Shown: positions 11,001 through 56,214 of the stretch, one piece after another
How positions within the stretch are numbered: position 1 is the first letter of the stretch
Layout: each line of letters opens with the position of its first letter
DNA from: Macrostomum lignano
Taxonomy: Eukaryota
Direction of reading: 5' to 3'
DNA length: 64,000 nt
Assembly (NCBI GenBank): GCA_002269645.1
Contig: NIVC01000829.1
Span: forward strand, 248,001-312,000
Program-made: the position numbers and the translations under genes
The notes under the pieces: model-generated
The model's database searches: none
The model's input: the letters and a program-made list of their open reading frames with translations, nothing else
What the model was told of the DNA's origin: nothing

Positions 11001-11947
11001 GCAGCAGCAGCGGCAGCAGTTGTTGATGGTGAAGACACTGGTCGAAAAGTTAAAGCATCCGATACCATCGTTTTAATGTTCTCCATGTACTTGTTGATGA
11101 AATACTGCGGTTGCTGTTGTTGTTGCTGCTGCTGCTGTTGCACAGAAGGTGACGAATAAGAAGCCTTTGGACTTCTTGTCGTCCCAGACGAAGCAAAAGT
11201 AGCAGCAGCCGCAGTAACAGCAGCAGCCTGGGCCGTTGATCGTTCAACAAAATCTTCTTCTAAACTGTTAAACTTTGCCTGACTTAAATAGCGTTTTGTC
11301 TCTTCGGATAAATAGTCGTACACAGAAATTTGTTGTTTCTGCTGAGCTGGAGAAGCCTGAGCAGGTGGCGGAGGCGGTGGCGGCGGTGGTTGAGGATGCT
11401 CCGGAGACACAACCGAGCCGTTTCCAACGCGCTGTCCCTGGTAACCAGTGGTACTGAACGTGCGCCAATTATCATAACTGGAGCTGCCGTTGTGAACTCC
11501 AACAGTAAGCGGTTTGGCGGCATCGCCAGCTCTGAGATTATATTTCTCTAGCAGACGATTCAAGCTTTCGTCAGTAGGCAAGCCGTTGGCGCTATGATCA
11601 GACTTCGATATGTCGGAAACATCTGAGCCGCTATTATTGCCAAAGTCGTCCTGCAGCCGCTGCTGTCTATGATTGCTATTTGGTTCGTCAAATTCAACGC
11701 TAGACGATTCTAAGTCATCATCTTTGTAAGCTTGAGCTTGAGCTCTTTGTTGATGCTGCTGCTGCAGCTGTTCATCTGAAAACTGATTAGCTAATCTACG
11801 GCTCAAGTCAGTACCGGACATGGCCAAGGCGGATGTTGTGGGATCAAGAGGAGGAGGAGGCAGAGGAGGCTGTTGCCTTGGCGATGGAAGATGAAGCTCA
11901 GCTGCCGGGTCTTCGCGAGCGTAATTATCCGGATGCTCTTGGTCCAT
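8010..11947 (-). CDS. SAM-domain + TKL-type pseudokinase protein, ~1144 aa; exons 11947-9660, 9354-8853, 8654-8010
   Basis: ORF 9656-12004 ends on a GG|GTAAGC donor (its TAA is intronic). Phase 2 matches acceptor CTCAG|C at 9354, and CAG|GTAGTT...CCGCAG|ATC joins GQ to ISDLG. SAM at ~10820-10640 (VHRWLNSL...LRKLGV...KMLHSIREL). Kinase motifs GEGTLT, VAVK, HMRLCSRN, DLG, MAPE, DLYSAG. Confidence 0.85.
8682..8808 (+). other. Two tandem degenerate 28S rRNA-derived fragments (H69-H71) inside intron 2 of the SAM-pseudokinase gene
   Basis: GGTAAACAAGGGGAGTAACTATCAC...TGCCTCGTCATCTAATTA and GGGTAAACAGCGGGAGTAACTATGAC...TGCCTCGTAATCTAATTAG, compared with conserved LSU GGGTAAACGGCGGGAGTAACTATGACTCTCTTAAGGTAGCCAAATGCCTCGTCATCTAATTAG. 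Confidence 0.85.
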
Positions 11948-13924: not shown

Positions 13925-16075
13925 TCAGCGCACATTATCCTTGGACAGCAGGCTAACGGGCACGTGTCCGGAGTCGCCAAAGCAGCGCAGGCAGACCCGG
14001 CCGTCCGGGTACAGGTCCAGCCAGGTGATTGAGCAGTGATCAACCGAGAAGCGAAGCCAAGCTTCTGGCGGCAACTGCAGAGCCCGACAGACCATGTAGC
14101 GTATGATGTTGCGATGACAGACGAATACCTTGGGTTGAGGATTACACTGGCTGTAAGATATTTCAGTACACTTTTACGTCTGTTGCAATGTGTCCACCAG
14201 ATCCCATGCAGACTTGTCCGCAAGATCCCATGCAGACTTGTCCGCAAGATCCCATCAAGACTTGTCCGCAAGATCCCATCAAGACTTGTCCGCAAGATCC
14301 CATCAAGACTTGTTCGCAAGATCCCATCAAGACTTGTCCGCAAGATCCCATCAAGACTTGTCCACAAGATCCCATCAAGACTTGTCCGCAAGATCCCATC
14401 AATACTTGTCCACAAGATCCCATCAAGACTTGTCCGCAAGATCCCATCAAGACTTGTCCGCAAGATCCCATCAAAACTTTTCCACAAGATCCCTTTAAGA
14501 CTTGTCCGCAAGATCCCATCAAGACTTGTCCACAAGATCCCATCAAGACTTGTTCGCAAGATCCCATCAAGACTTGTCCGCAAGATCCCATCAAGACTTG
14601 TCCACAAGATCCCATCAAGACTTGTCCGCAAGATCCCATCAATACTTGTCCACAAGATCCCATCAAGACTTGTCCGCAAGATCCCATCAAGACTTGTCCG
14701 CAAGATCCCATCAAAACTTTTCCACAAGATCCCTTTAAAACTTGTCCGCAAGATCCCATCAAGACTTGTCCACAAGATCCCATCAAGACTTGTCCACAAG
14801 ATCCCATCAAGACTTGTCCGCAAGATCCCATCAAGACTTGTCCGCAAGATCCCATCAAGACTTGTCCGCAAGATCCCATCAAGACTTGTCCACAAGATCC
14901 CATCAAGACTTGTCCACAAGATCCCTTTAAGACTTGTCCACAAGATCCCTTTAAGACTTGTCCACAAGATCCCTTTAAGACTTGTCCACAAGATCCCATC
15001 AAGACTTGTCCACAAGATCCCATCAAGACTTGTCCGCAAGATCCCATCAAGACTTGTCCGCAAGATCCCATCGAGACTTATCCACAAGATCCCATCAAGA
15101 CTTGTCCACAAGATCCCATCAAGACTTGTCCACAAGATCCCATCGAGACTTGTCCGCAAGATCCCATCGAGACTTATCCACAAGATCCCATCAAGACTTG
15201 TCCGCAAGATCCCATCGAGACTTATCCACAAGATCCCATCAGGACTTGTCCACAAGATCCTACCGAAACTTATCCACAAGATCCCATCAAGACTTGTCCA
15301 CAAGATCCTACCGAAACTTATCCGCAAGATCCCATCAAGACTTATCCGCAAGATCCCATTTCGAGCCCCACGCAAAAATAAGCCTCATCCAAGCACAAGC
15401 ACAGACCTCCAGCTCATTGGTGGACTCTCCCGCATCGTCATCAGCCCGATGAATATGCCGACGGAAAGCTGCCTCAGCCCTGGCAGCCCTGTCGTGATAG
15501 TAGAACTCCGGCACAAAATGTGCCCCAGGCGGCTCAGGCGGACACGGCCAGCCAACTTCAGTCAACAGGTGACACTCTTGTCTCTTCAAATTATTTGGCA
15601 GATAGCGCATAGCTAATTCCGCAGTTTGCACGGCTCTAGGCGCGCTAGACGAAATAATCCTGCTAATACCGTAGCGTCTGTGCAGCTGGGCCAAGCGGTT
15701 ACCCAGTTGTTCAGCTTGGCGTCTACCCAGATCGTCTAGCAGCCTATCGGAATGATGAAACCTGCCGTGCCTAACCAGAATAATACTGCGGATATTATTA
15801 TTATTACTAGTACTACTATCAGTAGTTCGCCAATGTCTATTATCCCAATTATTGTTCCATTTAGTTCCGGGTAGCACTGGATCGCAGCAGCGAAGATTGT
15901 TCAATAATTGATCGCTGGTCACCGGGCGCAGGTAGACCGCTGGTGCCGAGGGATCCGCGACAGACATCGGTTTATTGTCAGGCGCTAACGAGGACAACTC
16001 GGTGTACAGAGCGGCGCTAGCGGCGCCAACAGCGGCGCAGGATAAGCCGAAGCCGAGCAGGCGACTCGGCAACAT
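13925..16075 (-). CDS. PGAM5: PGAM5-like mitochondrial histidine-phosphatase-family phosphatase, copy A, 290 aa; exons 16075-15407 and 14128-13925
   Basis: N-terminal hydrophobic anchor, [25 protein letters not shown], then spliced ELE|[57 protein letters not shown]. Phase-0 intron GAG|GTCTGT...CCAAG|GTA. Confidence 0.92.
14195..15360. repeat. 24-bp minisatellite filling the PGAM5-A intron
   Basis: CAAGATCCCATCAAGACTTGTCCG units. Confidence 0.95.
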
Positions 16076-16144
16076 GCATTCGATTTTATTTGGCTGGTTT
16101 GTTGCTAGGAACCTGGGATAGTTCAGAAATGGGAAGAGTATGAG

Positions 16145-16585
16145 AGAGGGGGATATTTTAAGACGGGGAGATTCTGAGATCGGGATATTTCAGCAATGGG
16201 GAGATTCTGAGATGGGGGATATTTCAACAATGGGGAGATTCTGAAATGGGGATATTTCAACAATTGGGAGATTCTGAGATGGGGATATTTTAAGAATGTG
16301 GAGTCTGAGACTGGATTTTTTAGGAATGGGGAGATTCTGAGATCTGGATTTTTAACTATAGGGCTATTCTAAAATTGGAATATTTCAACAATGGGGAAAT
16401 TCTGAGATGGGAATATTTTAACGATGGGAAGATTCCGATATAGGGATATTTCAACAATGGGGAGATTCTGAAATGGGGATATTTCAACAATTGGGAGATT
16501 CTGAGATAGGGATACTTTAAAAATGAAAGAATTCTGAGGGGGATTTTAAGAATTAGAAGAGATTTTGAGACGGGATATTTGAACA
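16145..16585. repeat. ~32-bp minisatellite between the PGAM5 copies
   Basis: GGGATATTTCAACAATGGGGAGATTCTGAGAT units. Confidence 0.85.
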
Positions 16586-16737
16586 ATAGGAAAAGATCTA
16601 CAAAGGGATATTTAAAGTTAGTTAGCCATCGTTTTTACCTATCAAATAGTAAAAAACTTCTAAAAATTTAAAAAAACAAAAAGTGAACAGTATAGCTATA
16701 AATTATTTCTATTTTTAGCGCGGTGGCACAAGCCGTA

Positions 16738-18734
16738 CTATAAAAACAACAACAAAGAACATACATGTAAGAACGTTAAACTGCATAGACATAGACATAG
16801 ACATAGAGAGTTGGCGTGACAAACGATCACTTCGAGTTTGGCCCCGTTGGCAACTATTTGAGCTTCGTCGCTTCGACTTGACCGATGAATATGTCGACGA
16901 AAGGCGGCCTCGGCCAAGGCGGAGCCTTCGTGGTAGCGGTACTCCGCTCTGTAGTTGTTCATGGGCGGCTCTGGCGGGCAGGGGCAGCCGATCTCGCGCA
17001 GCATGGGGTCCTCAGCGCGCTTGCCATTCAGGTGGGGCAGGTGCCGCATAGCCAGCTCCGACGTCTCCACCGCTCGGGTTGAATTTGACGACATCAGCCG
17101 AGCGATGCCGTGTTTGGCGTGCAGCTCGGCCAGGCGGATGCCGAGAAGGTCGGCCTGAGAAAGAAAGTCACTCAGTCAGTCTGGGATATTGTGCGCGTAA
17201 CTAGCCTCGGCAACTGGGGATCTGGGAGGCTGGCTCAGCAACTGGGGATCTGGGAGGCTGGCCCAGCAACTGGGGATCTGGGAGGCTGGCCTCGGCAACT
17301 GGGGATCTGGGAGGCTGGCCCAGCAACTGGGGATCTGGGAGGCTGGCCCAGCAACTGAGGATCTGGGAGGCTGGCCCAGCAACTGGGGATCTGGGAGGCT
17401 GGCTCAGCAACTGGGGATCTGGGAGGCTGGCCTAGCAACTGAGGATCTGGGAGGCTGGCCCAGCAACTGAGGATCTGGGAGGCTGGCCCAGCAACTGGGG
17501 ATCTGGGAGGCTGGCTCAGCAACTGGGGATCTGGGAGGCTGGCCTAGCAACTGAGGATCTGGGAGGCTGGCCCAGCAACTGAGGATCTGGGAGGCTGGCC
17601 CAGCAACTGAGGATCTGGGAGGCTGGCCCAGCAACTGGGGATCTGGGAGGCTGGCCCAGCAACTGAGGATCTGGGAGGCTGGCCCAGCAACTGACATTCT
17701 GGGAGGCTGGCCCAGCAATTGAGGATCTGGGAGACTGGCCTAGCAACTGGGGATCTGGGAGACTGGCCCAGCAACTGAGGATCTGGAAGGCTGGCCCAGC
17801 AACTGAGGATCTGGGAGGCTGGCCCAGCAATTAAGGATCTGGGAGGCTGGCCCAGCAATTGAGGATCTGGGAGACTGGCCTAGCAATTGAGGATCTGGGA
17901 GGCTGGCCTAGCAACTGGGGATCTGAGAGGCTGGCCCAGCAACTGGGGATCTGGGAGGCTGGCCTAGCAACTGAGGATCTGAGAGGCTGGCCCAGCAACT
18001 GAGGATCTGGGAGGCTGGCCCAGCAACTGGGGATCTGGGAGGCTGGCCTAGCAACTGAGGATCTGGGAGGCTGGCCCAGCAACTGAGGATCTGGGAGGCT
18101 GGCCCAGAAACTGAGGATCTGGGAGGCTGGCCCAGCAACTGAGGATCTAGGAGGGCGGTAGCCCAGCAACTGGGAGCCTAAAAGCTTAACTTATTCATAA
18201 AAAGCCATTTACACAGCCATCCCACTCACCTGCTCCCTACCCATATCGTCCAGATGACTGCTGGCCAGGCTGTACCTGCCATGCCTAATCAGCACAATGT
18301 GCCGCACCTGACTGCCAGCCTGGCCCTCCATAGCATCCCAGTTCCGGTTCCATTTGGCTCCGCTGACCGGCACAGCGGGGCCGCAGCAGCGCAGGTTGCT
18401 ATGCAGAGAGTCCGGAGAAGCGTCAACACTGGGCAGCGGGTTGATGTAGATCGGAGCGGCCGCAGTCAAAGGTGCGGCAGTGGCAGCGGAGGCTGCACCA
18501 GCTAGTAGCGGCTTACAGAAACGATTCGAGCTGCAGTCTGATCGACCATCGGACTGGGATGGAGAAGGCGAGCTGTGCGACTGCGACACCAGAGCTGCGG
18601 CAGCGGCGCCAAGAGCGGCGCACGGAAGGCCGACGCGCGACAGAAGGTGCGGCCACAGCAACGGTGATTGAGCAGTGGCGTTGGTGCTCAAGTCAAAAAC
18701 ATAACGCCTGATAGTTGGGCTTTGACAATTAAAG
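16738..18734 (-). CDS. PGAM5: PGAM5-like copy B; exons ~18734-18230 and 17154-~16810; no in-frame ATG before the anchor and no own C-terminal exon found
   Basis: WNRNWD, LIRHG, CAG|GTGAGT...TCTCAG|GCC phase-0 intron, SSNSTRAVET, MLREIG, EVIVCHAN. Similarity stops abruptly at 16810 and the frame closes at 16738. Confidence 0.8.
17200..18170. repeat. 28-bp minisatellite filling the PGAM5-B intron
   Basis: GGCCCAGCAACTGGGGATCTGGGAGGCT units. Confidence 0.95.
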
Positions 18735-20282: not shown

Positions 20283-22679
20283 TCACTTCCGGTTAGCGTG
20301 TTTCCGATCGTCCCTACGCCGAAAGAACAGAACTAGATCGCCGCCACTCTTCCAATAGAAATGCTTGGCTGTTCTCAGGTCCATATTAGGATCCAAGACC
20401 GTATCGTTAATAAGAATTTCGACTAATTCTTCAGCCGGTTTCTGCTGCTGATCGCCTGTAGCCGCATCAGATGAAGCTGCTTGATTCGTGGAGTGCGGAG
20501 GCGGCTGCTGCTGCTGCTGCTGATGATAGGGGAGCGGGGGCGGCGGCGCCCCTGGTGGCAAGCTCTCAGTGCGCCACATCTCTACAACGTGCTCCGCCAC
20601 TTTGCGTATCTGCAGCATATCGTTGGCACTAAGTCGATCTTTGCGTAAACTTTTCACGCTAGACGACGGATATGGATTTAAATAGAAAGAGATTTTGATG
20701 TACTTTGGCAGATTCTTTTCGATTAGAATGTCTGTAATCCATGCTGGCACTGTCTCGTTGAGAATTGAGTTCTCCGATTCACCCCCGCTGTCTCTAACCA
20801 GCAGTCGGAACAGAGTCCTCCCAGTTGACTCGCTTAGCACTACCGGCGTGTGCTGAGGCACAGAGAAGTACATGTTAGCCCTGGTGTATCCGCCGTCCTC
20901 TTTGCGCACTCGAGTAGGTGGCCAGTGCTCAAACAGGGCTTGTAGTACTAAACCGCCGTAGTTGATCTTTGAATCTGGTTGTGCCACCCCGCCAGCCACT
21001 TGCGGTTCTCTCGGCAGACTGTCAACAGCTATGCCGCTGTCTCTCTGACTGACCCAGGCGCTAAAGCAGTCCTGCTCTTCCAGATGAATCATTGGTAGGC
21101 CAGTTTTCAAGTCAACGGAGAACCAGCTGGGTACAAAGACTCTCTTAGCTGTCATATCGGCCACTCGCTGATCAAAACTACCCGGAGGAAGGTCCTGCAG
21201 TTTGCGGACTAGCACTACATCGTACAGTGCAACGCAATCGTTGGAATCTTTAGTTAAAAGGAAGCGTTTATCGTTGCTAATATGATATTGACGAATACAG
21301 CTGCCGCCAGTGATGCAGAAATTCGGTTTTGGCGATAGAGGCGGCTGCTGCGGCTGCTGCAAAGGCGGAGGCGGCGGCGGCATAGGAGGAGGCGGAAGTG
21401 AAGGCGGCGTTTTGTCGCCATCGGGAGAGGCGGCGGCGGATGCAGAGGCGGACGCAGATGCCGAGCCAGAGGCTGAAGAATTGGTGAGATCTGAGAATGC
21501 GGCAGTTGTTTGACCAACAGCGTTGCCGGAAGCGTTATTAGTCGATGACGTCATAGCCGGATGTTGATTCTGACGGTTAGAAACGTGCTGGCTATGCTGG
21601 AACGGTAATGAAGGCAATGGCCAGCGCTTCACATTGGTATTAGTTGTTGATATCCACAAATGCGGCTGTTGAGCCTCTTCAACTAGCAGCACCTTCAGCA
21701 CCGGACAGTCCTCCTGACAGATTAGCCGGCAGGGCTTCTGATTATCGACGAGATCCCAAGCCAAGACTTGAGCATCCTTGCCCGAAGAGTACAACGTATT
21801 GAAGGCTTCGTTGGCCTGCAAAGTCCAGACGCCTGCAGTATGGCCATAAAAGGTCCATATACAGCGCTGCTCCCCCACAGACCACAGCTTAATAGTGCCG
21901 TCAGAGGAGCCGCTCAATATCCTAGAGCCGTCATTGCTAATTACAATCGCGCGAACATTGTCAGTGTGACCGCGAAGTTTGCACTGCTTCTGACAGGATC
22001 TGGGATCCCAGATTCGCAAGACATTCTCTGTACTACCTGACACAATCATTGTGGCGCTATGGTTCATTGCCAGACTGTAAATACTGTCTTTATTACCAGC
22101 TAGACTACTAGTAGTAACAGTGTTATTACTGGCAGTTAATGCTGTTAAAACATTCACATCCCAAATGTAGATTGCTTTATCCAGTCCGGCTGAAGCTACT
22201 AACTCTTTGTGCTTAGCATAAGCAAGCGCTCGCACGTAGTCTTTGTGCGTGCGCAATGTTGACATGCAGAAGCCTCTGGAACTATTCCAAACTTTCACTG
22301 TAGTATCGGAGGAACAGCTGATGAGATTTTTTCTACTGCAACAGAGTACAATGTCATTAACCCAGTCTGTGTGATGCTCCATAGACTGCAGGTAAGGCTC
22401 ATCGGGATTGGCGGTATTATAGATCCGAATTATGCTATCCCGACCGGCTGTGAACAGGCGGTTCTGTACGGGGTCGAACTGCAACGAGTTCACGCCGAAT
22501 CGATTGTACTTTTCAATTTCATCGCGAATCACGTAGCTGACTTGGACTCGCTTACGGCCGAGGGTGCCGCCCATGCCACCGCCGATGCTGCCGACGCCGC
22601 CCATACCGACACCGGCGCCTCCGCCGCTCATGCCGAGGCCCATGCCCTGTCGATAGTGATTCATTGGCGGCAGGGCCAT
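20283..22679 (-). CDS. WDR48: WD repeat-containing protein 48 (UAF1, USP1/12/46 activator), intronless, 798 aa
   Basis: [26 protein letters not shown] start, WD40 repeats ([28 protein letters not shown]), [13 protein letters not shown], and C-terminal [22 protein letters not shown]. Confidence 0.96.
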
Positions 22680-22934
22680 TGTCTGCTCTGCTTCTTTTAT
22701 GCTTAATCAATCTTTTTTGCAAGCAATGCAGGCTTCTTTTTCTTTTGAAGCGTAAAAGAAGTGATTTGATCAACTCGGCCCAGAATATGGAAGAGAAGAC
22801 AAGATCAATCAGTAAGTGGGAGCGAACTACATGGCAGTGGTCTGTCAGAAATGACAAAAAAGATGAAAAATTAACTATATTAAGCAAAACTGATTATTCA
22901 AACTAGCAGCTAAAATATTTCTTTCTTTTGTTCC

Positions 22935-23182
22935 AGCGCGGTGGTCTGATGTGCCAGCGGCCCAGGCCCGATTCCAAGTGCAGTCTCATTAATTTGGGGG
23001 CTAAATTGCAATCTCGGTTGTACAACCTCAATGATAAAGTTAGGGCCGATGTACACTCCTGTGTGAGTGTGTGCCTGTGCGTATGACTGCGTACGTATCC
23101 GCGCGCTTGTGTGCCTGCTCAGGGGAGTCAATGCCTCACGCCGGTTGTGTGGCAATTGTCGCTTAAAGTGCGCCAGGGTGCA
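22935..23182 (+). mobile_element. Older, 5'-truncated copy of the same SINE family
   Basis: Colinear similarity to the 55-kb copy (CCCAGGCCCGATTCCAAGTGCAG, GATAAAGTTAGGGCCG, GTACACTCCTGTGTGAGTGTGTGCCTG, GCTCAGGGGAGTC, CGCTTAAAGTGCGCCAGGGTGCA). Lacks the A box and an internal block. Confidence 0.8.
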
Positions 23183-23686
23183 AGACACCATGGCGAAGGT
23201 TGTAGCGCTAGAGTCAGACTCGTTCACCGCTAAGTTGCTACCCTACTCAGAATCCCAACCAAGGCATGCTTCTCAACGGATTCTTTTTCTGACCTAATTA
23301 AATGACGAAAGATCAAAATAAGCCGTTAACTTTGATTTTCTGTGTATATATTTAGCTAAAGACAGAAGGTATAAATTAGACGCAAGAACAGGATCAAATC
23401 TACGAGCTCAAAATGACGAATAAAAACAATTTGATACTAAATTCTACTGTAAGTAACAAGTAACGCGTATCGATTCAAAGTGAAAAAAGAAAGCCAAATA
23501 TAGCTAATTTAACAGTCAAAAGGCCATATTCACTACTTAGTTGGTAACTAGAATGAAAACGAATGAAGATTTTTTAAAGTTAAAAAGCTATCTAAAACTA
23601 GATAGATGAATAAAAATATTTTCTATAGAGAAAACTGGTGTTAAAAAGTGATTAATATCAAGAGAAAACTAACTAACTTGGTTGAC

Positions 23687-23743
23687 ACGATCAGGCGGGT
23701 AAACGGCGGGAGTAACTATGACAGACAGGCCTCATCATCTCAT
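23687..23743 (-). ncRNA. Candidate box C/D snoRNA (57 nt) antisense to 28S rRNA; predicted target equivalent to human Gm3744 (SNORD87 target)
   Basis: Terminal stem AUGA/UCGU, bulge G, C box AUGAUGA (23738-23732), 28-nt perfect antisense to conserved LSU GCGGGUAAACGGCGGGAGUAACUAUGAC (23722-23695), D box CUGA (23694-23691). Lies 28 nt inside a putative intron (donor CCAG|GT at 23772). Confidence 0.55.
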
Positions 23744-23779
23744 TAGTTTAAAAAACTATACAGGACTAACACCTGGCAT

Positions 23780-24911
23780 TCAAGGAATTGCAAGCCTCAT
23801 TCTTGGAGCAGGAAAGCGACGATGACCAGTTGGCTCATCCGGCTCCTGATGCTGCTGCTGCTGCTGCACAACTCGACAACCTCTAGGAGACAGAGTCAGC
23901 CTAGCAACTATAGGCGCCTGTTCAACATTGCCAAGCTGCTGCACCTTGCTAGCGGCTCTATTCGACTGATTCCTGTGTCGGCATCGACCAGAATCATTAT
24001 TAGCTTTAACTGCCAGCGGCGAAGTCCGCTTTCCAATCCGGCCCTGCAGTTGCTGCTGTTGTTGTTGAGGCCGGCGACGTGCAGCGGCGAGGTTACCGGA
24101 GGCCAGGATTTTGGCTGCGGCGGATTCTACAGGCGGAATCGGGGTGGACGCGATGCCACCGCGCCAGGTGGCCCGCTGCCTGCCGATCTGGGCAAGGAGG
24201 CGAACGCACCCCTGTTGGGAGGGGGGGGGGAGAATTGCAAGTTTTTTGGGATTAAGTTAGCTTGGAAGCTTACGATAACATTCAGTGATCTCCGGTGACC
24301 TCTAGTGACCTTCAGTGACCTCTAGTGACCTTCAGTGACCTCTAGAGCTTAAGTGACCTTTAAACCGATTCTTAAGTGACCTCTAGTGACCTTTAAACCA
24401 ATTCTTAAGTGACCTCCAGTGACCTTAAATGATCTTTAACCCGATTCTTTAAGTGACATTCAGTGACCTCTAGTGACCTTAAGTGACCTTTAACCAGATT
24501 CTAAGTTACATGCAGTAACTTCTAGTGACCCTAAGTGACCTATAACCCAATTATTTAGTGCCAGTCAGCGACCTTTAAAAATCCCTTTTGATGTATAAAT
24601 GACCTCTAAAAACCCAATCCTTTTTAGCGACACTCAATGACCTCAGTAACCTCTAAAGCCCAAATTGAAATTTAACTGAACATATTCTTTGCACTTCACT
24701 TGGGATTTGCATTCAGTGACTGCCAACTCCAAAATTATCTGATATTTCTTACCTGATATCCCACGCTGCTACTCAGAACGCTCTTTTTACTTCCAGTAGT
24801 ATCATTAGTCTGTATTTTATCAACCGTTCCTGTTGTCGTGTACGTTGAGCCGCTGTTGCCAGCGCCAGTACCTCCAGCACGATTGCTCGATTCCGGATGA
24901 CCAAGCTCCAT
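23780..24911 (-). CDS. Two-exon coding unit not in the ORF track (24911-24753, 24211-23780; 196 codons), PTB/PID-like; C-terminal extension of NADSYN1 and/or a separate gene
   Basis: CCAG|ATG at 24911, 53 open codons, CAG|GTAAGA donor, CCCAACAG|GGG phase-0 acceptor, then 143 open codons with poly-Q. VGYQGCVRL, AAAKIL, ARLTLSPRGCRVV and GHRRFP resemble the PTB beta1, helix, beta2 and following strands. Confidence 0.65.
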
Positions 24912-24949
24912 CTGGTTAGATATTTATGGAAAAACTGTTAAAATTTACT

Positions 24950-25612
24950 AAGTTACCTGGTTCCTTGGTTACCTGGCTATCTGGTTACCTGGTTATAGCT
25001 GGTTACTTAGTTGCCTGGTTACCTGATTACTTGGTTACCCGGTTACTTGGTTACCCGGTTACTTGGTTACTTAGTTGCCTGGTTACCCGGCTACTTGGTT
25101 ACCCGGTTACTTGGTTACCCGGTTACTTGGTTACCCGGTTACTTGGTTACCCTGTTACTTGGTTACCCTGTTACTTGGTTACCCGGTTACTTGGTTACCC
25201 GGTTACTTGGTTACCCGGTTACTTGGTTACCCGGTTACTTGGTTACCCGGTTACTTGGTTACCCGGTTACTTGGTTACTTAGTTGCCTGGTTACCCGGCT
25301 ACTTGGTTACCCGGTTACTTGGTTACCCGGTTACTTGGTTACCCGGTTACTTGGTTACTTAGTTGCCTGGTTACCCAGCTACTTGGTTACCCGGTTACTT
25401 GGTTACCCGGTTACTTGGTTACCCGGTTACTTGGTTATCCGGTTACTTGGTTACCCGGTTACTTGGTTACCCGGTTACTTGGTTACCCGGTTACTTGGTT
25501 ACCCGGTTACTTGGTTACTTAGTTGCCTGGTTACCCGGCTACTTGGTTACCCGGTTACTTGGTTACCCGGTTACTTGGTTACCCGGTTACTTGGTTACCT
25601 GGTTACTTGGCT
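24950..25612. repeat. 16-bp minisatellite (8-bp subunits) between NADSYN1 exon 6 and the hidden exon
   Basis: GGTTACCCGGTTACTT units. Confidence 0.95.
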
Positions 25613-25629
25613 AGCCAATTAACATTCCC

Positions 25630-28600
25630 TCATCTACATAAAAAACATGCAAGCTTACTACTCACACTCACTTTATCAGTAGTCAACACGGGTTCGCAAC
25701 CGGCCATCTGGTCAACTAGTTGATCAATCTGTTGAAACTGCCAAGGCCAGTTGACATTGTAAAGAAACTGCCGATGATCGAACCGGTTATCATCAATATT
25801 ATAAGCCTCTGCATGATAGGACGGAGTCAGCACAGTCACTTTGTGCCGGTTAATCGAATAAGATCGAAAAAAATGCTTCACTTTATCGGCCACAACTTTG
25901 GCGGAATGCTGAGGCCACAGACGCCGCAGGCGCAGGAACATGGCAACCGGGCCGCACTTGTCAAGTTTGCGCAATCTGCCATATGCTGACAGCTCATCGT
26001 AGGTCATACCCATGTCAACTTCATCAGTCTGGGCCAGCTGCCCATTAGCGGCCAGTGGCTCTAACTCAGCCGTAGGCGGAGCTGAGAAAATCTCTCCCAG
26101 AATGCTAATTCCGTGCCTACGCATCGAATAGCGGATAAATGATCTTAAATCGGATTTACTAATCCCTCCGATGGGATTAACATCGGCACTAGAGCAGTCG
26201 TATTTTGTCATGTAGCCGCGTAGGCCTTCGTCAAGATTGGCGCTGCCCAGCACCAACAGGTTGCCTGTCAGGCCTCTGTGGGGAAAACATGGAGAACTTT
26301 TATCCCTCAGGTCATCATGCAGCTAAACATTGTTAGAAATATCTAAGAAATATCTAAGAAATATCTAAGAAATATCTAAGAAATATCTTAGAAAGATTCT
26401 TTAAAATCTCTTCCCAGATTCCATTCTCATTCCAAATCTCTCCTGAGATCCCATTCTTATCACAAATCTCTCCCAAGATCCCATTCTCATCCCAAATCTC
26501 TCTCAAGATCCCATTCTCATCCCAAATCTCTCCCGAGATCCCATTCTCATCCCAAATCTCTCTCAAGATCCCATTCTCATCCCAAATCTCTCCCGAGATC
26601 CCATTCTCATCCCAAATCTCTCTCAAGATCCCATTCTCATCCCAAATCTCTCCCAAGATCCCATTCTTATCCCAAATCTCTCCTAAGATCTCATTCTTAT
26701 CCCAAATCTCTCCTAAGATCTCATTCTCATCCCAAATCTCTCCCAAGATCCCATTCTTATCCCAAATCTCTCCTAAGATCTCATTCTTATCCCAAATCTC
26801 TCCTAAGATCTCATTCTCATCCCAAATCTCTCCTAAGATCTCATTCTTATCCCAAATCTCTCCCGAGATCCCATTCTCATCCCAAATCTCTCCCGAGATC
26901 ACATTCTCATCACAAATCTCTCCCAAGATCCTATTCTTATCCTAAATGTCTCCCCAGATCTCATTCTCATCCCAAATCTTTCCCGAGATCCCATTCTCAT
27001 CCTAAATCTCTCCCAAGATCCCATTCTTATCCTAAATTTCTCCCAAGATCCCATTCTCATCCCAAATCTCTCTCAAGATCCCATTCTTATTCCAAATCTC
27101 TCCAAAAGTCCAAAGTTCACCGCGCTCACCTTGCCAGCAGCACCAGCTGAGCAAATAGATAGGCCAGCACCATTCGAACCCGAGCTTGCACATTCTGTAA
27201 TGCCAGATTTTCCTGGGCGCTGCCACCGTGAGCTCGAAATTTCGGTTGCAAACCGGTGCAGGCAACGAATATGGCTACCAGGGCCGATACCTGGATTTGG
27301 GCAGGGATAAGGGATTTTAACTACCCCATCAAATCATGATTGGGGATTTTAGGGGATCGAAAATCGATTAATCCGATCAAATCATAATTGGGGATTTCTG
27401 AGATTGGAAATCCATTTTTCCCATCAAATCACAAATGGGGATTTTTGGGATTGGAAATCGATTTATCCCATCAAATCACAAATGGGGATTTTTGTGATTA
27501 GAAATCGATTTATCCCATCAAATCACAAATGGGGATTTTTGTGATTAGAAATCGATTTATCCCATCAAATCACAAATTGGGATTTTTGAGATTGGAAATC
27601 GATTTATCCCATCAAATCACAAATGGGGATTTTTGTGATTAGAAATCGATTTATCCCATCAAATCACAAATTGGGATTTTTGAGATTGGAAATCGATTTA
27701 TCCCATCAAATCACAAATGGGGATTTTTGTGATTAGAAATCGATTTATCCCATCAAATCACAAATGGGGATTTTTGTGATTAGAAATCGATTTATCCCAT
27801 CAAATCACAAATTGGGATTTTTGAGATTGGAAATCGATTTATCCCATCAAATCACAAATGGGGATTTTTGTGATTAGAAATCGATTTATCCCATCAAATC
27901 ACAAATTGGGATTTTTGAGATTGGAAATCGATTTATCCCATCAAATCACAAATGGGGATTTTTGTGATTAGAAATCGATTTATCCCATCAAATCACAAAT
28001 TGGGATTTTTGAGATTGGAAATCGATTTATCCCATCAAATCACAAATGGGGATTTTTGAGATTGGAAATCGATTTATCCCATTAAATCATAAATGAGGAT
28101 TTTTTATATCGGAGATTAAATTATTTCCAGCAATTATGTATTGGGACTCTTAGGATCCAAAATTGGATTATCCTCATTTATGGGATTTGGAATAATAAAA
28201 AATGGGATAAACTAATACAAAAGTCTATATATACCGCAGCATCAATCCTCAAAGCCAGATGACTTGCTCCAATCTCCTTAGCCAGTTGTTCAGCTCGCTG
28301 TCTAGTCTCACTCGAGCTGTTCTCGGAGCCCATATAGCAGGTGGTGAACAGGCGCGAGCAAATGTCCTGCGGCGAGCCGGGTAGGAACTGAGGATCGCGA
28401 ACTATTCTGCGAAGGTCTTGCAGCACCTGGAATTTGTTTAAATGAAGAAATTTTATGAAACTCGTTCTGGTATGCAACAGTGCGCGCAAGATCTAGTATT
28501 CTTAGAAAACAGTGCGCGCAAGTTTCAGTATTCTTAGAAAACAATGCGCAGTTTCAGTTTTCTTGGAAAACAGTGTGCGCGAATTTTAGTATTCTCAGAA

Positions 28601-31600
28601 AACAGTGCGCTCAAGTTTCAGTATTCTTAGAAATCATTGCGCGCAAGTTTCAGAATTCTTAGCCAAGTAACTATATTAGCTATATAATAGCTAATATAGC
28701 TATAGAATTTTCTTAGAAAACAATGCGCAGAAGTTTGTTTTCTTAGAAACATTGCGCGCAAGATTTAGTATTCTTATTAGAAAACAGGGCGCGCAAGTTT
28801 CAGTATTCTTAGAAAACAATGCGCTTAAGTTTCAGTATTCTTAGAAATCATTGCGCGCAAGTTTCAGTATTCTTAGAAATCATTGCGCGCAAGTTTCAGT
28901 ATTCTTAGAAATCATTGCGCGCAAGTTTCAGTTTTCTTAGAAAACAATGCGCAGAAGTTTGTTTTCTTAGAAACATTGCGCGCAAGATTTAGTATTCTTA
29001 GAAAACAGGGCGCGCATCAGTATTCTTAAAAAAAACATTGCGCGCAAGTTTCAGTATTCTTAGAAAACAGGGCGCGCATCAGTATTCTTAAAAAAAAACA
29101 TTGCGCGCAAGTTTCAGTATTCTTAGAAAACAGGGCGCGCATCAGTATTCTTAAAAAAAACATTGCGCGCAAGATTTAGTATTCTTAGAAAACAGGGCGC
29201 GCATCAGTATTCTTAAAAAAAACATTGCGCGCAAGTTTCAGTATTCTTAGAAAACAGGGCGCGCATCAGTATTCTTAAAAAAAACATTGCGCGCAAGATT
29301 TAGTATTCTTAGAAAACAGGGCGCGCATCAGTATTCTTAAAAAAAACATTGCGCGCAAGTTTCAGTATTCTTAGAAAACAGGGCGCGCATCAGTATTCTT
29401 AAAAAAAACATTGCGCGCAAGTTTCAGTATTCTTAGAAAACAGGGCGCGCATCAGTATTCTTAAAAAAAACATTGCGCGCAAGTTTCAGTATTCTTAGAA
29501 AACAGTGCGCGCAAGTTTCAGAATTCTTAGCCAAGTAACTATATTACCTCTTGACAGCCGGACTGAACAGACTCGAACACCTGTACAGACATGCTGTAGA
29601 CAAGACACGAAGTGGCCGTACTGTCAATGCCTCCGCTTAGGGGAAGAAAATAGCCTGACTGACCGCTTCGTCTGAGATAATCCCACAGCCAGCAGGCTGG
29701 GCCCAGGGCGATTTCCTCTTCCGGCGTGTGATAGCGGGGCTCCATTGGTAGGTTGGTGCTCTGCCGTTGGTAAGTTGAAACAAAAATTTCTAACTATTAG
29801 AACTGGTATTTTCGAGAATTAATGTGAGCTTAAATACACACTATTACACGTTTGACGCTTTTCCTCCGTCTTACATGCAAAGTATCTATCTCGCCTTAAT
29901 ATCTAGTATCTAGTATCTCTAGTATCTCACCCCAGTCTCAAGTATCTATCTCACCCTAATCTCTAGTATCAATCTCACCCCAGTCTCTAGTATCTTTCTC
30001 ACCCTAATCTCTAGTATCAATCTCACCCCAGTCTCAAGTATCTATTTCACCCAATCTCAAGCATCTATCTCACCCCAGTCTCAAGTATCTATATCACCTT
30101 AATCTCTAGTATCTATCTCACCCCAATCTCAAGTATCTATCTCACCCTAATCTCAAGTATCTATTTCACCCAATCTCAAGCATCTATCTCACCCCAATCT
30201 CAAGTATCTATTTTACCCAATCTCAAGCATCTATCTCATCCCAATCTCAAGCATCTATCTCACTCCAATCTCAAGTATCTATCCCACCCCAATCTCAAGC
30301 ATCTATCTCACCCCAATCTCTAGTATCTATCTCACCCCAATCTCTAGTATCTATCTCACCCTAATCTCACGTATATATCCCACCCCAATCTCAAGCATCT
30401 ATCTCACCCCAATCTCTAGTATCTATCTCACCCTAATCTCACGTATCTATCTCACCCTAATCTCACGTATCTATCTCACCCCAATCTCTAGTATCTATCT
30501 CACCCCAATCTCACGTATCTATCTCACCCCAATCTCTAGTATCTATCTCACCCCAATCTCTAGTATCTATCTCACCCCAATCTCAAGCATCTATCTCACC
30601 CAATCTCAAGCATCTATCTCACCCCAATCTCAAGCATCTATCTCACCCCAATCTCTAGTATCTATCTCACCCAATCTCAAGCATCTATCTCACACCAATC
30701 TCTAGTATCTATCTCACCCAATCTCAAGTATCTATCTCACCCAATCTCAAGCATCTATCTCACCCCAATCTCTAGTATCTATCTCACCCCAATCTCAAGC
30801 ATCTATCTCACCCCAATCTCAAGCATCTATCTCACCCCAATCTCTAGTATCTATCTCACCCTAATCTCAATTATCTATCTCACCCCAATCTCTAGTATCT
30901 ATCTCACCCAATCTCAAGCATCTATCTCACCCCAATCTCAATTATCTATCTCACCCCAATCTCAATTATCTATCTCACCCAATCTCAAGCATCTATCTCA
31001 CCCCAATCTCAAGCATCTATCTCACCCCAATCTCTAGTATCTATCTCACCCAATCTCAAGCATCTATCTCACACCAATCTCTAGGATCTATCTCACCCTA
31101 ATCTCTAGTATCTATCTCACTTCAGTCTCTAGTATCTATCTCACCCCAATCTCTAGTATCTATCTCACCCCAATCTCAAGCATCTATCTCACCCCAATCT
31201 CAAGCATCTATCTTACCCCAATCTCTAGTATCTATCTCACACCAATCTCTAGGATCTATCTCACCCTAATCTCAAGCATCTATCTCACCCCAATCTCTAG
31301 TATCTATCTCACCCTAATCTCACGTATCTATCTCACCCCAATCTCAAGCATCTATCTCACCCCAATCTCTAGTATCTATCTCACCCCAATCTCTAGTATC
31401 TATCCCACCCCAATCTCAAGCATCTATCTCACCCCAATCTCTAGTATCTATCTCACCCCAATCTCTAGTATCTATCCCACCCCAATCTCAAGCATCTATC
31501 TCACCCCAATCTCTAGTATCTATCTCACCTCAATCTCACGTATATATCCCACCCCAATCTCAAGCATCTATTTCACCCCAATCTCACGTATCTATCTCAC

Positions 31601-34248
31601 CTCAATCTCACGTATCTATCTCACCCCAATCTCACGTATCTATCTTACCCTAATCTCACGTATCTATCTCACCCCAATCTTAAGTATCTATCTCACCCCA
31701 ATCTCTAGTATCTATCTCACCCAATCTCAAGCATCTATCTCACCCCAATCTCAAGCATCTATCTCACCCCAATCTCAAGTATCTATCTCACCCTAATCTC
31801 ACGTATCTATCTCACCCCAATCTCAAGCATCTATCTCACCCTAATCTCACGTATCTATCTCACCCCAATCTCTAGTATATATCCCACCCCAATCTCAAGC
31901 ATCTATCTCACCCCAATCTCAAGTATCTATCTCACCCCAATCTCACGTATCTATCTCACCCCAATCTCACGTATATATCCCACCCCAATCTCAAGCATCT
32001 ATTTCACCCCAATCTCACGTATCTATCTCACCTCAATCTCACGTATCTATCTCACCCCAATCTCACGTATCTATCTTACCCTAATCTCACGTATCTATCT
32101 CACCCCAATCTTAAGTATCTATCTCACCCCAATCTCTAGTATCTATCTCACCCAATCTCAAGCATCTATCTCACCCCAATCTCAAGCATCTATCTCACCC
32201 CAATCTCTAGTATCTATCTCACCCTAATCTCACGTATCTATCTCACCCCAATCTCAAGCATCTATCTCACCCTAATCTCACGTATCTATCTCACCCCAAT
32301 CTCTAGTATATATCCCACCCCAATCTCAAGCATCTATCTCACCCAATCTCAAGTATCTATCTCACCCCAATCTCACGTATCTATCTCACCCCAATCTCAC
32401 GTATCTATCTCACCCCAATCTCACGTATCTATCTCACCGCAATCTCAAGTACCTATCTCACCATCTCACCCACCTGACAGGCCGCAGCCACATCTTGGCG
32501 GCACAGACGCCACTGCGGCACAGCAATTCGAGTCAATGCGGGTGCCTCAGCGCTCTGCTGGCAGTGTGACCGGTTGGCCTGCCTATAGTTGCGAATCTCT
32601 TCCAAGTCAACAGTGGCCGAAGTGACTTCGACTTCTTCTAAAGCGAATTGCCGACTCTGAGCTACCAACCTGCCGTTCATAGCAACCAAAGCGGAACCGT
32701 CGTAATAAACTCGTTCGCCATCACAGCCTCTCAGATTAGAGTACAGATACAATCCACCAGCTTTATTAGTACAGCTAGAGATTAGATCTACCCGGCGATT
32801 GAGCTTTCTCAGCTGGTGATAGCTACCCGAGCTGTTCACCACAATGTCAACACCATTCAGAAACAGATCGATATGACTGGATCCGATTGTCCAAATCTCT
32901 TCGCAAGTTTCAAAACCCAGACTGGCATCGCGAAATGCCAGCACAGCGTCGCCAAACGGAGCAGTGGATTGGCCAATGGCCGACTCAATCAAGTCTGGCA
33001 GCTGGAAAGTTTTGTCAATTTCGCCGCGTTTTGTCCAACGGGAGAACCAGCGGGATTCCCTGCGGGTGGGTATGGTATTTACTGACTTCTAAACCCCTGA
33101 TAATTAATGTATTATAGCACTGCTCATGGAGGCTCATATATTTTTCTAACTATTAAAAGATAAACTCAGATACTTCAGGGAGGGTTTGATCGCTTCTATT
33201 CAAATAATTCAGGGAGGGTCTGATCGCTTCTATTCAGATACTTCAGGGAGGGTCTGGTCGCTTCTATTTAGATACTTCAGGGAGGGTTTGATCGCTTCTA
33301 TTTAGATACTTCACGGAGGGTCTGGTCGCTTCTATTCAGATAATTCAGGTAGGGTCTAATCGCTTCTATTCAGATACTTCAGGGAGGGTCTGATCGCTTC
33401 TATTCAGATACTTCAGGGAGGGTTTGATCGCTTCTATTCAAATACTTCAGGGAGGGTCTGATCGCTTCTGTTTAGATACTTCAGGTAGGGTCTAGTCGCT
33501 TCTATTTAGATACTTCACTACTTCAGGTAGGGTCTAATCGCTTCTATTCAGATACTTCAGGGAGGGTCTGATCGCTTCTATTCAGATACTTCAGGGAGGG
33601 TCTGATCGCTTCTATTCAGATACTTCAGGGGTCTGGTCACTACAAATCACAAACTTAAGGGAGGGTCTGATCGCTTCAAATCACAAACTTCATGGAGGGT
33701 CTGATCGCTTCAAATCACAAACTTCAGGGAGGGTCTGATCGCTTCAAATCACAAACTTCATGGAGGGTCTGATCGCTTCAAATCACAAACTTCATGGAGG
33801 GTCTGATCGCTTCAAATCACAAACTTCATGGAGGGTCTGATCGCTTCAAATCACAAATACTAACTAATAACCTGTAATTTCCATCGTCAGCCATTCGAGT
33901 TTTCGGTCGAATAAGCAGCACCTGACCGTTGAGAAACACAACCCGACAATTGTAGGCCACGCCGAGATGCCTCACGGGCATGCCAACATCGCAGACAATA
34001 TCCCTAGTAGCCGGATCAATTAGCAGATCCCTTAACACCTGCCAACTATGCAGAAAGGTGTCACCTTCGTAGAAATGGTCAGAACAACCGTAGCCGCTGA
34101 TCTCCAGCTCAGGGCCAAGTCGATAAGATGCTCCAAGTCGTTTAGCTTCGATAATACTCGATAATATTCTGCGCTTATTACCGGCAAAATCCATGGACCA
34201 TTGGTTGAGCACACAGGTGGCCATTGTGCACAGGCTAGCGGCTTCCAT
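25630..34248 (-). CDS. NADSYN1: Glutamine-dependent NAD(+) synthetase; exons 34248-33872, 33059-32474, 29760-29548, 28426-28235, 27290-27130, 26275-25630 (724 aa unspliced end) or 26275-25672 if spliced onward
   Basis: Nitrilase triad GPELE / IRPK / CEEIW, P-loop [53 protein letters not shown]. All five introns are GT-AG and phase-compatible. Confidence 0.96.
26410..27100. repeat. 30-bp minisatellite, NADSYN1 intron 5
   Basis: CCCAAATCTCTCCCAAGATCCCATTCTCAT units. Confidence 0.92.
27365..28090. repeat. 47-bp hairpin-containing minisatellite, NADSYN1 intron 4
   Basis: AATCACAAA-TGGGGATT-TTTGTGATT inverted repeat plus an AAATCGATTT palindrome per unit. Confidence 0.92.
28480..29530. repeat. 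GCGCGC-containing ~30/60-bp minisatellite, NADSYN1 intron 3
   Basis: CTTAGAAAACAGGGCGCGCATCAGTATT and CATTGCGCGCAAGTTTCAGTATT units. Confidence 0.9.
29920..32450. repeat. ~24-bp minisatellite (2.5 kb), NADSYN1 intron 2
   Basis: AATCTCAAGCATCTATCTCACCCC units. Confidence 0.95.
33170..33860. repeat. 34-bp minisatellite with two subtypes, NADSYN1 intron 1
   Basis: CTTCAGGGAGGGTCTGATCGCTTC core with TATTCAGATA or AAATCACAAA ends. Confidence 0.9.
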
Positions 34249-34394
34249 ATTGCTGCGAAATTATATTTGTTTATTTATCTGCAGGCTTCTTCTTTCGGTA
34301 AATCAAATTTTATGTTGGATATTTGCATGAAATTGAAAAAAAAATTCACACTAAAATATCTACTGACAATCACCGTAGGAAAACGTGACACACT

Positions 34395-39250: not shown

Positions 39251-39314
39251 GGTAAATGGCAGCTGTACCTATGACATTTTAAGTAACAAAAGTGCCTCAT
39301 CATCTAATTAGTGA
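39251..39314 (+). other. Decayed 28S rRNA-derived fragment (same H69-H71 segment) upstream of PDSS2
   Basis: GGTAAATGGCAGCTGTACCTATGAC (20/25 identical), degenerate TTAAGTAACAAA middle, TGCCTCATCATCTAATTAGTGA (21/22). Confidence 0.75.
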
Positions 39315-53302: not shown

Positions 53303-54406
53303 TCAGACGCCGTGATGGGCCAGTCATCCAGCAGCGACCTTCGCCCAGAGCCGCCCCCGCCGCTGGCCTGGTTCCGAGTTCACCGACTGAGCAGCAGCAG
53401 CCTGCAGGCCGACTGGAGCTGGGCCGCCCCCGTAGCCTCCAGCCACCTCCTTCTGGTGCCATCCGACGTTTCAACCGACGACAAATCCGAGCCGTCATAT
53501 TCCTCGTCTGCAGCCGGTGCACTGTCGCTGAGGCCGGCTCATCGAGTCCGACTGAGTCCCGCAGCGGAGACCTACTCAGTTGAGGACCTGCAGCCTGACA
53601 CAGCCTACCGAGTCTGTCTGCAGTTCAGCCCAGCAGCGGCAGGTGCAGCTGTCCAGTCCAACACAACCAGCTCCAGTCGCCATCAGACGCGCCCAGTGGA
53701 GGCCATGCACTGCGTGGACGCCAGCACCAAGCAGGCGCACATTCCGGCCAGCATCGGCAGCTGTGTCGGCGCTCTGTGCGCCCTGCTACTCGTGCTCACC
53801 CTGGTGCTCCTGTCGCGGCGGACGAAACGCTATCGAAAAATCAATGAACGACAGACTTCGTCGAAACGAGTAGCGCAGGAGAGCGCGCTTCTGCAGCAGC
53901 AGCAGCAACAGCAAGCGGCTGCTGCTGCGGCGGCTGCTGCGGCGGCTTCTGCGGCGGCTGCTCCTTCATCCCCATCAGCTCAACCGCAGCCTCCACCTCC
54001 GCCACCGCCGCCACCTCCCCTGGCCACGCCCAGCCTGTGCGAGCCCGAATCTCTACTCGATGCGGAAGCCACGTCCGCTGAAGCAACCGCAGTGTCAGAC
54101 CTGCCCCAGGAGATGTCTACCTCTTTAATATCCTCGTGCACCATCAACGGGCGCCAGGTGATCCAAGTGAATGAAACGGACGAATATTCTATCGATCTGC
54201 GCCATTGCGAGACTCTGTCGCGTCAGCAGAGCCTGAGAACTGCAGCCACGCTGAGCGACACTGATGGAGCGCAAGAGATGCAGGACAATTACGAGAACTA
54301 CTCAGATGAGGAAAGGAAAGAGGCTGCAGATGAGGAAGAGTTGGTTGATCATCAGCAAACAGCAACTTCTGCACTGCTGTACACGCAGCTGATTGAGACA
54401 CTATGA
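53303..54406 (+). CDS. Terminal exon of a single-pass membrane protein: FN3 domain + TM helix + cytoplasmic tail (FLRT/LRFN/FNDC-like); 5' exon(s) with a signal peptide not identified
   Basis: Acceptor CCTCCAG|TCA at 53303. WSW...YSVEDLQPDTAYRVCL...HCVDAST FN3 pattern, TM IGSCVGALCALLLVLTLVLL, and RRTKRYRK stop-transfer. Confidence 0.75.
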   Translation, partial: SDAVMGQSSSSDLRPEPPPPLAWFRVHRLSSSSLQADWSWAAPVASSHLLLVPSDVSTDDKSEPSYSSSAAGALSLRPAHRVRLSPAAETYSVEDLQPDTAYRVCLQFSPAAAGAAVQSNTTSSSRHQTRPVEAMHCVDASTKQAHIPASIGSCVGALCALLLVLTLVLLSRRTKRYRKINERQTSSKRVAQESALLQQQQQQQAAAAAAAAAAASAAAAPSSPSAQPQPPPPPPPPPPLATPSLCEPESLLDAEATSAEATAVSDLPQEMSTSLISSCTINGRQVIQVNETDEYSIDLRHCETLSRQQSLRTAATLSDTDGAQEMQDNYENYSDEERKEAADEEELVDHQQTATSALLYTQLIETL

Positions 54407-54524
54407 AATGCTTTATTATTCAGAGTATGTATCAGGGGTTGGCAGACTCCGGCCCTCCTATCTGTTTAGCCTTCGGATTCTTTGGAACTTCACAGTCTCT
54501 TCTCAGATCTCTTCTGTCTTGTCT

Positions 54525-55545: not shown

Positions 55546-56214
55546 CTCTCTGTTCCCTATTTTCTCTTCTCTCCTCTCACCCTTTTTTATTTTTTTCTTG
55601 GCCTCTTATCATCTCTTCTCTCTTCCCTAATATTTTCTCCCATCTAACCAATCTCTCATCTCATTTCCCCTCTTATCTCACAAATCTCTAATCTCATATT
55701 CTCCCACGCCTATACCTACATCTTTCTTCTCTTATCTCTATCCCCTCTCCTTTCCTCTCTCACCTGTCTCGCAGCCATATGGTAGATTCTTTATCTGGTC
55801 TGTGAATGTGGCAAGAAGTTTGCCAGCTCCTGATTTTTGGTTAAACTCTAACAACCCACCTGGTCAAATTTCGTGTACATTAGCATTCTTTCTGAAGTTC
55901 ATAAAAAGTCGCTAGTTTCTAGTCGCTAAAATATGATTTTAAGTGTGCCGCAATATGCAAAAATGTTAGTCTCCAATAAAACCAGTGTCTATGCTTACCA
56001 AAGTTAGTTTTATTGCTGAATAAATTGCATGTCTACAGTAAAAGTGCAGTTGGGTTATGGCGTTTAGCGACGGGAGATTATAAATTGTAATCACTATTAA
56101 TCACTATTATGACAAGGGATGGGTGTTAAAAGCAAAATATTCACCAAATCGGAACTTTCACAAGATCATTACTTTAACAAGATCAGATAGAATGATCTTT
56201 CTGATCATTCAGAA

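Follow-up and report, generated by a model that had tools for sequence, protein, structure and literature searches.

Can a guide RNA gene arise from an inverted copy of the rRNA segment that its product would modify? The question is raised by a 57-nt element, here termed c23k, which lies at 23743-23687 on the minus strand of the window, the 64-kb stretch of Macrostomum lignano contig NIVC01000829.1 (assembly GCA_002269645.1) that we analysed. The origins of guides have been ascribed to duplication, retroposition or 'de novo emergence', with few concrete cases (PMC2817437). In c23k, the guide and even the C box can be followed back, base by base, to antisense sequence of the target rRNA, and related states are present within the same 64 kb. 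A C-box site that varies between genome copies adds to the interest of the element.

We propose tentatively that c23k is a lineage-specific, minimal box C/D guide gene, young or just being born, a reading that we would doubt only slightly sooner than accept. A different explanation, quite possible although on balance doubtful, is that the element and its relatives are inert: a single 28S pseudogene fragment in inverted orientation would have given rise to all four through small duplications or retroposition, and none would have a function. In that case the 28S sequence itself would account for the near-C box, CUGA and the short stem of c23k would be there by accident or chance inheritance, the C-to-U change in the C box would be an ordinary CpG transition, and no RNA would be processed or assembled.

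Box C/D organization of c23k

Direct reading of the minus strand gave AUGA-G-AUGAUGA-GGCCUGUCU-28-nt 28S antisense (GUCAUAGUUACUCCCGCCGUUUACCCGC)-CUGA-UCGU. The boxes, guide and k-turn geometry are exactly as laid out in an earlier, sequence-only reading of this DNA (Table 1). The C box AUGAUGA is near the 5' end and the D box CUGA near the 3' end, and their positions fit canonical k-turn geometry. The terminal stem beside the boxes (stem I) has 4 bp (A-U, G-C, U.G, A-U), including one G.U pair, and G-A-U can form a 3-nt loop. One stem base is a G in place of the 28S-derived U and is matched by a C on the 3' side. The 28 bases of the guide, all perfectly antisense to 28S, abut CUGA, and the fifth base upstream of the D box pairs with the G before UAAAC.

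Some properties of c23k are unusual for the class. C/D guides are usually roughly 10-21 nt long, shorter than the 28 nt found here, and eukaryotic snoRNAs are generally longer than 57 nt. No C'/D' boxes were present in the 9-nt spacer, and no further CUGA was found in ~190 nt downstream. C'/D' boxes are often degenerate in eukaryotes, so their absence is not disqualifying. A longer snoRNA in which CUGA serves as the D' box, as in sn2343 of Caenorhabditis elegans, was rejected because there is no downstream CUGA.

Rfam searches of the window yielded no match at the gathering score or at E<=1, and identity with a known Rfam snoRNA was rejected because nothing reached threshold. The best local match was sn2343 (15.1 bits; cut-off 60). 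The covariance model of SNORD87, against which the earlier reading had proposed a check, gave no match at E<=10. The minimum-energy fold of c23k pairs both ends, and its energy is ordinary (z = -1.2). The lack of an Rfam match at threshold and the non-significant fold both favor an inert sequence.

Table 1. Coordinates of the c23k element, its related copies and neighboring features in the window.
Feature	Positions	Strand	Description
c23k, stem I 3' strand UCGU	23687-23690	minus	
c23k, D box CUGA	23691-23694	minus	abuts guide; 5th base upstream pairs with G before UAAAC
c23k, 28-nt guide	23695-23722	minus	perfect antisense to 28S GCGGGUAAACGGCGGGAGUAACUAUGAC
c23k, spacer GGCCUGUCU	23723-23731	minus	GGC still 28S antisense
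c23k, G + C box	23732-23739	minus	G 23739 = first k-turn loop base; AUGAUGA 23738-23732
c23k, stem I 5' strand AUGA	23740-23743	minus	pairs with UCGU at 23687-23690
c23k, 5' arm of inverted 28S similarity, ACUAAUGAGAUGAUGAGGC	23729-23747	minus	17/19 to 28S antisense
c23k, whole copy	23687-23747	minus	
Copy 8kA	8754-8808	minus	C-box position AUUACGA (G-to-U, dead); middle 11 nt; without D box
Copy 8kB	8681-8745	minus	AUGACGA; full 19-nt diverged middle
Copy 39k	39251-39313	minus	full-length decayed inverted 28S segment; AUGAUGA; without D box
Middles of the copies	8710-8728, 8780-8790, 23723-23728, 39276-39294		scrambled or deleted in all four; arms nearly intact
SAM-domain kinase gene	8010-11938		annotated; 1141 aa
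GT..AG intron of SAM-domain kinase gene	8655-8852	minus	198 nt
WDR48 homologue	20283-22679	minus	start codon ~1 kb downstream of c23k
NAD-synthetase-like gene	23780-34250		annotated; 907 aa
Stop codon TGA of NAD-synthetase-like model	23780-23782	minus	37 nt upstream of c23k

Origin from 28S rRNA and predicted target

The 28-mer of the guide was found in the window once exactly and once with 3 mismatches (0 occurrences in 100 shuffles), and its BLAST E value was 1e-10. An environmental eukaryotic 28S gene from a metagenome (L004) and the Rfam LSU_rRNA_eukarya consensus ...AAgCgCGGGUAAACGGCGGGAGUAACUAUGACUCUCUUAAGGUAGCCAAAUGCCUCGUCAucUAAUUagUGAC... are both perfectly complementary to it. The 5' arm is likewise antisense to 28S. 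The presence of two such arms indicates that c23k is a single uninterrupted piece of 28S in inverted orientation, with CUGUCU, now part of the spacer, in place of its central 19 nt. The source segment comprises ~65 nt of 28S, at Rfam LSU positions about 2236-2303 (helices 68-71). The proposal that c23k comes from an inverted 28S fragment was thus borne out by the 28-nt perfect antisense together with the 17/19 match of the 5' arm. Also in line with that proposal, the C box differs from the antisense of 28S UCGUCAU by a single C-to-U change. This change is located at a CpG and is very recent; one assembly copy still has AUGACGA.

The rRNA similarity had been said to stop where CUGA begins. On consensus sequences this held: the match ends within two bases of the conserved AAgCg, and CUGA starts at that point. 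Neither CUGA nor the terminal stem as such comes from rRNA. The boundary was judged on consensus and environmental 28S, from which M. lignano's own 28S could differ, and the non-rRNA status of CUGA presumes that the latter does not read ...GAUCAGGCGGGUAAAC; with that sequence the D box would itself be rRNA antisense.

The fifth nucleotide upstream of CUGA faces the third G of GGGUAAAC in 28S. With yeast m5C2278 and human m5C3782 as reference points, we take this G to be yeast G2240 and human G3744. In the model of C. elegans sn2343, the guide GCCGUUUACCCGU followed by CUGA aligns with c23k in identical register. This common register, together with the G before UAAAC, makes the G equivalent to human Gm3744 the predicted target of c23k, the same as originally suggested. 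Gm3744 (old number 3723) in human 28S is guided by SNORD87 (PMC5597630).

Related copies in the window

BLAST with a 28S reference and an nhmmer profile located four copies of the segment within the 64-kb window, all on the minus strand: c23k, two neighboring copies at 8.7 kb (8kA and 8kB) and one at 39 kb (39k). All four span the same 28S segment with nearly the same end points. Because segment and ends are the same, the copies are evidently paralogues of one ~65-nt ancestor, not independent captures. When 1.4 kb of 28S was compared, no other part of it was found in the window, and general rDNA debris was rejected because only one 28S segment is present. The Rfam LSU model matched 39k on the plus strand (model 2255-2310, E 9e-4). 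A metagenome search for similar elements returned a single match, a true 28S gene. We consider the rRNA-derived origin and the family relationship of the copies very highly probable.

Comparison of the flanks within the window showed that those of the different copies are unrelated to one another. No tails, target-site duplications or flanking direct repeats were found at any of the three loci, although old copies could have lost them; a retrocopy (snoRT) was rejected because no retrocopy signatures were found. If the copies were inert, no mechanism is evident that would disperse a 60-nt unit into unrelated flanks.

The C-box variants had been given as ATGACGA and ATTACGA at 8.7 kb and as ATGATGA at 39 kb, and they are as stated. 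The suggestion that the four copies are stages of one route did not hold up: they are paralogues and form no simple ladder. In particular, the 8.7-kb pair looks like an old, decayed tandem duplicate and not like a precursor. In 8kA the C box is dead, and the 3' end is the tandem-duplication junction. The guide of 8kB has 3 mismatches in the first 25 nt of the 3' arm and a 4-nt deletion, and this 4-nt loss shifts the register onto an A. In 8kB, UAAA comes directly after CUGA (8685-8682) and forms 3 bp with the rRNA-derived AUUA. An interpretation of 8kA plus 8kB as a single C-D'-C'-D snoRNA was rejected because the boxes do not fit. One or both boxes are absent from three of the four copies, as would be expected of non-functional descendants.

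Non-uniform decay of the copies

The length of the middle differs among the copies (6, 11, 19 and 19 nt). In 8kB and 39k, the copies with the full 19-nt middle and the only ones covered by this comparison, mismatches to 28S were concentrated in the middle: 11/19 vs 4/42 in the arms of 8kB (p=1e-4), and 9/19 vs 6/42 in 39k (p=0.0095). The reconstructed ancestor of 8kA and 8kB had ~1/42 arm mismatches vs about half of the middle. Although similarity to rDNA is certain, the uniform neutral decay expected of an rDNA pseudogene fails, since decay is strongly non-uniform. Inert descent leaves this contrast unexplained. The contrast fits a C-box region and guide that were kept on either side of a free spacer, but retention of whole arms is not explained in this way: the arms were kept whole (17-20 and 25-28 nt), beyond what a C/D RNA needs.

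We considered whether the copies could be by-products of an rDNA-specific mobile element or endonuclease, i.e., remnants of 28S target sites that it carried or scarred, which would account for intact arms around a scrambled middle. The 19-nt middle surrounds CTCTCTTAAGGTAGC, which we take to be the 28S site where R2, Pokey and the I-PpoI-type intron preferentially insert or cleave. The stretch that has diverged or been deleted coincides precisely with these 19 nt, both arms are intact, and the middle varies in length between copies. However, none of the 20 long ORFs that were scanned was transposon-like or had a transposon domain, and the copies have unique flanks; on these grounds, membership in a larger transposon was also rejected. 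The lack of target-site duplications and tails likewise counts against this origin. The 19-nt middles of 8kB and 39k contain scattered substitutions and residual similarity, unlike cut-and-repair scars, and the 65-nt boundaries, CUGA and the stem are left unexplained. We judge this origin to be very improbable.

Scarcely credible, in our view, is a bipartite antisense RNA whose arms pair with 28S on either side of helices 69-70 while the middle remains unpaired, and which would act as a chaperone or present the loop (several modified positions in yeast and human) to an enzyme: both whole arms were kept far better than the middle in 8kB and 39k, but the 5' arm holds the C box and cannot both pair with rRNA and bind Snu13, and the c23k middle, cut to 6 nt, would strain the geometry. 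Bipartite C/D guides of this kind do exist (PMC5464676, PMC9670809), and the acetylation guides snR4, snR45 and SNORD13 pair in a bipartite manner.

D box and terminal stem

Returning to c23k as a candidate C/D guide gene, we compared its 3' end with that of 8kB. The sequence CCUGAU just 3' of the arm is common to both copies, with the 8kB arm 4 nt shorter. The second stem pair is U-A in 8kB and G-C in c23k, so that both sides have changed. This covariation was read directly, since the shifted D box of 8kB is wrongly placed by automatic alignment. The common CCUGAU and the partly compensated stem indicate that the D box predates the split of 8kB and c23k. They suggest that the common ancestor of the 8.7-kb copies and c23k already had D box and stem, and that pairing was kept afterwards. 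Any birth would be older than the earlier scheme implies, as D box and stem seem older than the split between the 8.7-kb and 23.7-kb copies.

When every window position was taken as an insertion point, 0.57% of them placed CUGA directly against the arm. For 0.1% of them, <=1 change in the rRNA-derived 5' strand would in addition give a 4-bp stem I; this is the chance per copy, for a family counted in the window only, and many copies genome-wide would weaken it. That CUGA and a usable stem would so rarely fall next to the arm by chance speaks against inert descendants, as do the CCUGAU and the stem with a compensated pair in 8kB.

Variation among assembly copies

Two further copies of the locus, ~98% identical, are present in the assembly: NIVC01002005.1 (L001) and NIVC01003311.1 (L002). 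The C-box position reads AUGAUGA in the window and L001 and AUGACGA in L002, and CUGA occupies the D-box position in all three. The L002 guide contains ACCCAC vs ACCCGC elsewhere, and the resulting A.C mismatch lies 2 nt from the D box. Both L002 differences are CpG transitions, one in the C box and one in the guide.

The three copies were compared over 5 kb, and each has private variants. They showed 2 changes in the 57 nt of c23k vs 2.2 expected from 1 kb of non-coding DNA downstream (~38 events). No purifying selection on c23k is therefore detectable, and the expectation that boxes and guide would be constrained relative to the flank failed among these three assembly copies. Change at the neutral rate of the flank is what an inert relic would show, and the explanation gains from the fact that both differences hit the C box or guide and are CpG transitions. 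The C-to-U change at the C-box CpG arose independently in 39k and c23k, and the guide position that varies in L002 is changed also in 8kA; these recurrences favor the same explanation.

AUGACGA is the ancestral state, since 28S and other copies carry it. The canonical C box consequently postdates the split of the assembly copies, which diverge by ~1-2%. The perfect 28-nt guide exceeds selective need and, judged from its sequence, looks like a sign of youth, not of maintenance. If c23k is indeed a guide gene, the assembly copies would constitute a natural allelic series, in which AUGACGA goes with a mismatched guide and AUGAUGA with a perfect one.

Two further features of the locus were observed among the three copies. 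No variant was present in the 1.37 kb upstream of c23k (about 23750-25120), which is the predicted C-terminal extension of the 907-aa NAD-synthetase-like model. Human NADSYN1 has 706 aa, so the model is about 200 aa longer. The region 20283-23800 is a mosaic: the WDR48 protein of the window is identical to that of L002 and differs from that of L001, whereas for c23k the identity is with L001 and the difference with L002. These relations suggest recombination or gene conversion among the assembly copies.

Genomic setting

The genes from 1 to 48 kb are on the minus strand. The four copies are oriented in the sense of these surrounding genes, i.e., the 28S segment is inverted relative to local transcription. 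The claim that c23k is intronic was not upheld: the annotated TGA (23782-23780) ends the coding sequence 37 nt upstream. A GT at 23779, 30 nt before c23k, is a possible splice donor. c23k may be located in a 3' UTR, a 3'-UTR intron or an intercistronic RNA. The fact that its position is not demonstrably intronic favors an inert sequence. The WDR48 ORF downstream is 99% identical to a M. lignano protein. Drosophila, at first suspected as the source of the DNA on account of CAG runs, was rejected because of this identity and of the exact agreement of the window with NIVC01000829.1. The 198-nt kinase intron at 8.7 kb consists almost wholly of 8kA and 8kB, and the three-exon kinase model gives 1141 aa, equal to the annotated product length and consistent with that intron. 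The 39k copy is in an AT-rich region upstream of the NAD-synthetase-like gene.

Several repeats were observed in the window. Long tandem-repeat arrays are present at 24900-32460, inside the range of the NAD-synthetase-like gene; they have periods of tens of bases and 75-94% identity between registers, and they give long spurious ORFs on both strands. A 3.1-kb unit is tandemly duplicated at 54393-58800, with identical repeat-derived ORFs of 274 aa at 54393-55217 and 57501-58325. A short dispersed repeat (~80% identity, E 6e-21) is found at 23100-23182, 54968-55064 and 58076-58172. The first of these copies sits between c23k and WDR48 and is unrelated to the rRNA-like family. Two tandem histidine-phosphatase genes with 35% identity and a KWNxNWD motif are located at 13925-18655 (minus strand); the pair presumably resembles PGAM5.

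Proposed history of the candidate guide

In the history that we propose as the most economical one, an inverted 28S fragment resembling 39k, without a D box, would have arisen first. CUGAU and a short terminal stem would then have been gained in the ancestor of the 8.7-kb and 23.7-kb copies; c23k is grouped with the 8.7-kb copies, with 39k outside, on the basis of the common CCUGAU and possibly of UGUCU in the middle. The 8.7-kb copy would have duplicated in tandem and decayed, 8kA losing the G of its C box and 8kB losing 4 guide nucleotides. c23k may have lost most of its middle while retaining the perfect 28-nt guide, and a CpG transition would have converted AUGACGA to AUGAUGA, the state now seen in two of the three assembly copies. 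By this account, the D-box step is inferred to be older than the C-box step.

If c23k is active, it would be transcribed in the same direction as the NAD-synthetase-like and WDR48 genes. Snu13, Nop56/58 and fibrillarin would bind the C/D motif, and exonucleases would trim the transcript to a ~57-nt RNA, which would pair with pre-28S and methylate the target G.

The idea that an inverted rRNA fragment is pre-adapted as a guide is retained in its central part, since C box and guide derive from the antisense, and is abandoned as regards the ladder of copies. A stronger form, in which c23k has been caught during its birth from its own target, would require that the fragment supplied guide and near-C box, that D box and stem were added, and that the C-box transition is still variable. 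We consider this form unlikely.

If the RNA is made, c23k would be a worked example of the birth of a guide, and it would imply a simple rule: a single transition and a CUGA would suffice to turn an inverted copy of 28S helices 68-71 into a guide for a conserved methylation site. If it is not made, c23k would be a cautionary case of rRNA debris that mimics a snoRNA.

Comparison with known systems

Cis and trans duplication of snoRNAs and the formation of snoRTs are documented by Weber 2006, Zemann 2006 and Schmitz 2008 (cited by PMC2817437). Duplicated and retroposed snoRNAs are, like the present family, short dispersed units in new introns or neighboring genes that are accompanied by decayed paralogues. 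The family differs from snoRTs in having no poly(A) tail, target-site duplication or carried flank, and its unit is an rRNA fragment.

Dispersed rDNA-derived sequences, e.g., SINE28, which carries 28S pieces (PMC10946416), resemble the family in that pieces of 28S occur outside the rDNA array. The family is distinguished by its single 65-nt segment, always inverted, its non-uniform decay, and box C/D motifs at its ends.

Weak Rfam matches to archaeal C/D sRNAs (snoPyro_CD, sR1, sR5 and sR32) were obtained. These sRNAs measure 50-60 nt and have GAUGAUGAG at the 5' end, as a likeness to c23k; however, they have symmetric C'/D' boxes and two 12-nt guides, and the matches to c23k cover the C box only.

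In yeast snR75 (RF01185), which directs Gm2288, the guide UAGAUGACGAG is antisense to the same piece of 28S as the 5' arm of the family. In snR75 this stretch is the guide before the D' box, whereas in c23k it would be the C box and its flank. The score was 11.6 bits vs a cut-off of 40.

Human SNORD87 (U87) and C. elegans sn2343 (RF01172) are box C/D guides for the same 28S G that is predicted for c23k. In sn2343, which is 78 nt long and has a second half, a guide of ~13 nt precedes the internal D' box, whereas in c23k a 28-nt guide precedes the terminal D box of a 57-nt unit without C'/D'. Alignment of the sn2343 model to c23k deletes 36 model positions, and c23k has no downstream D box. The score far below the cut-off therefore indicates a common target, not family membership. 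If functional, c23k would be an independently arisen analogue of SNORD87 and sn2343, not a member of their family.
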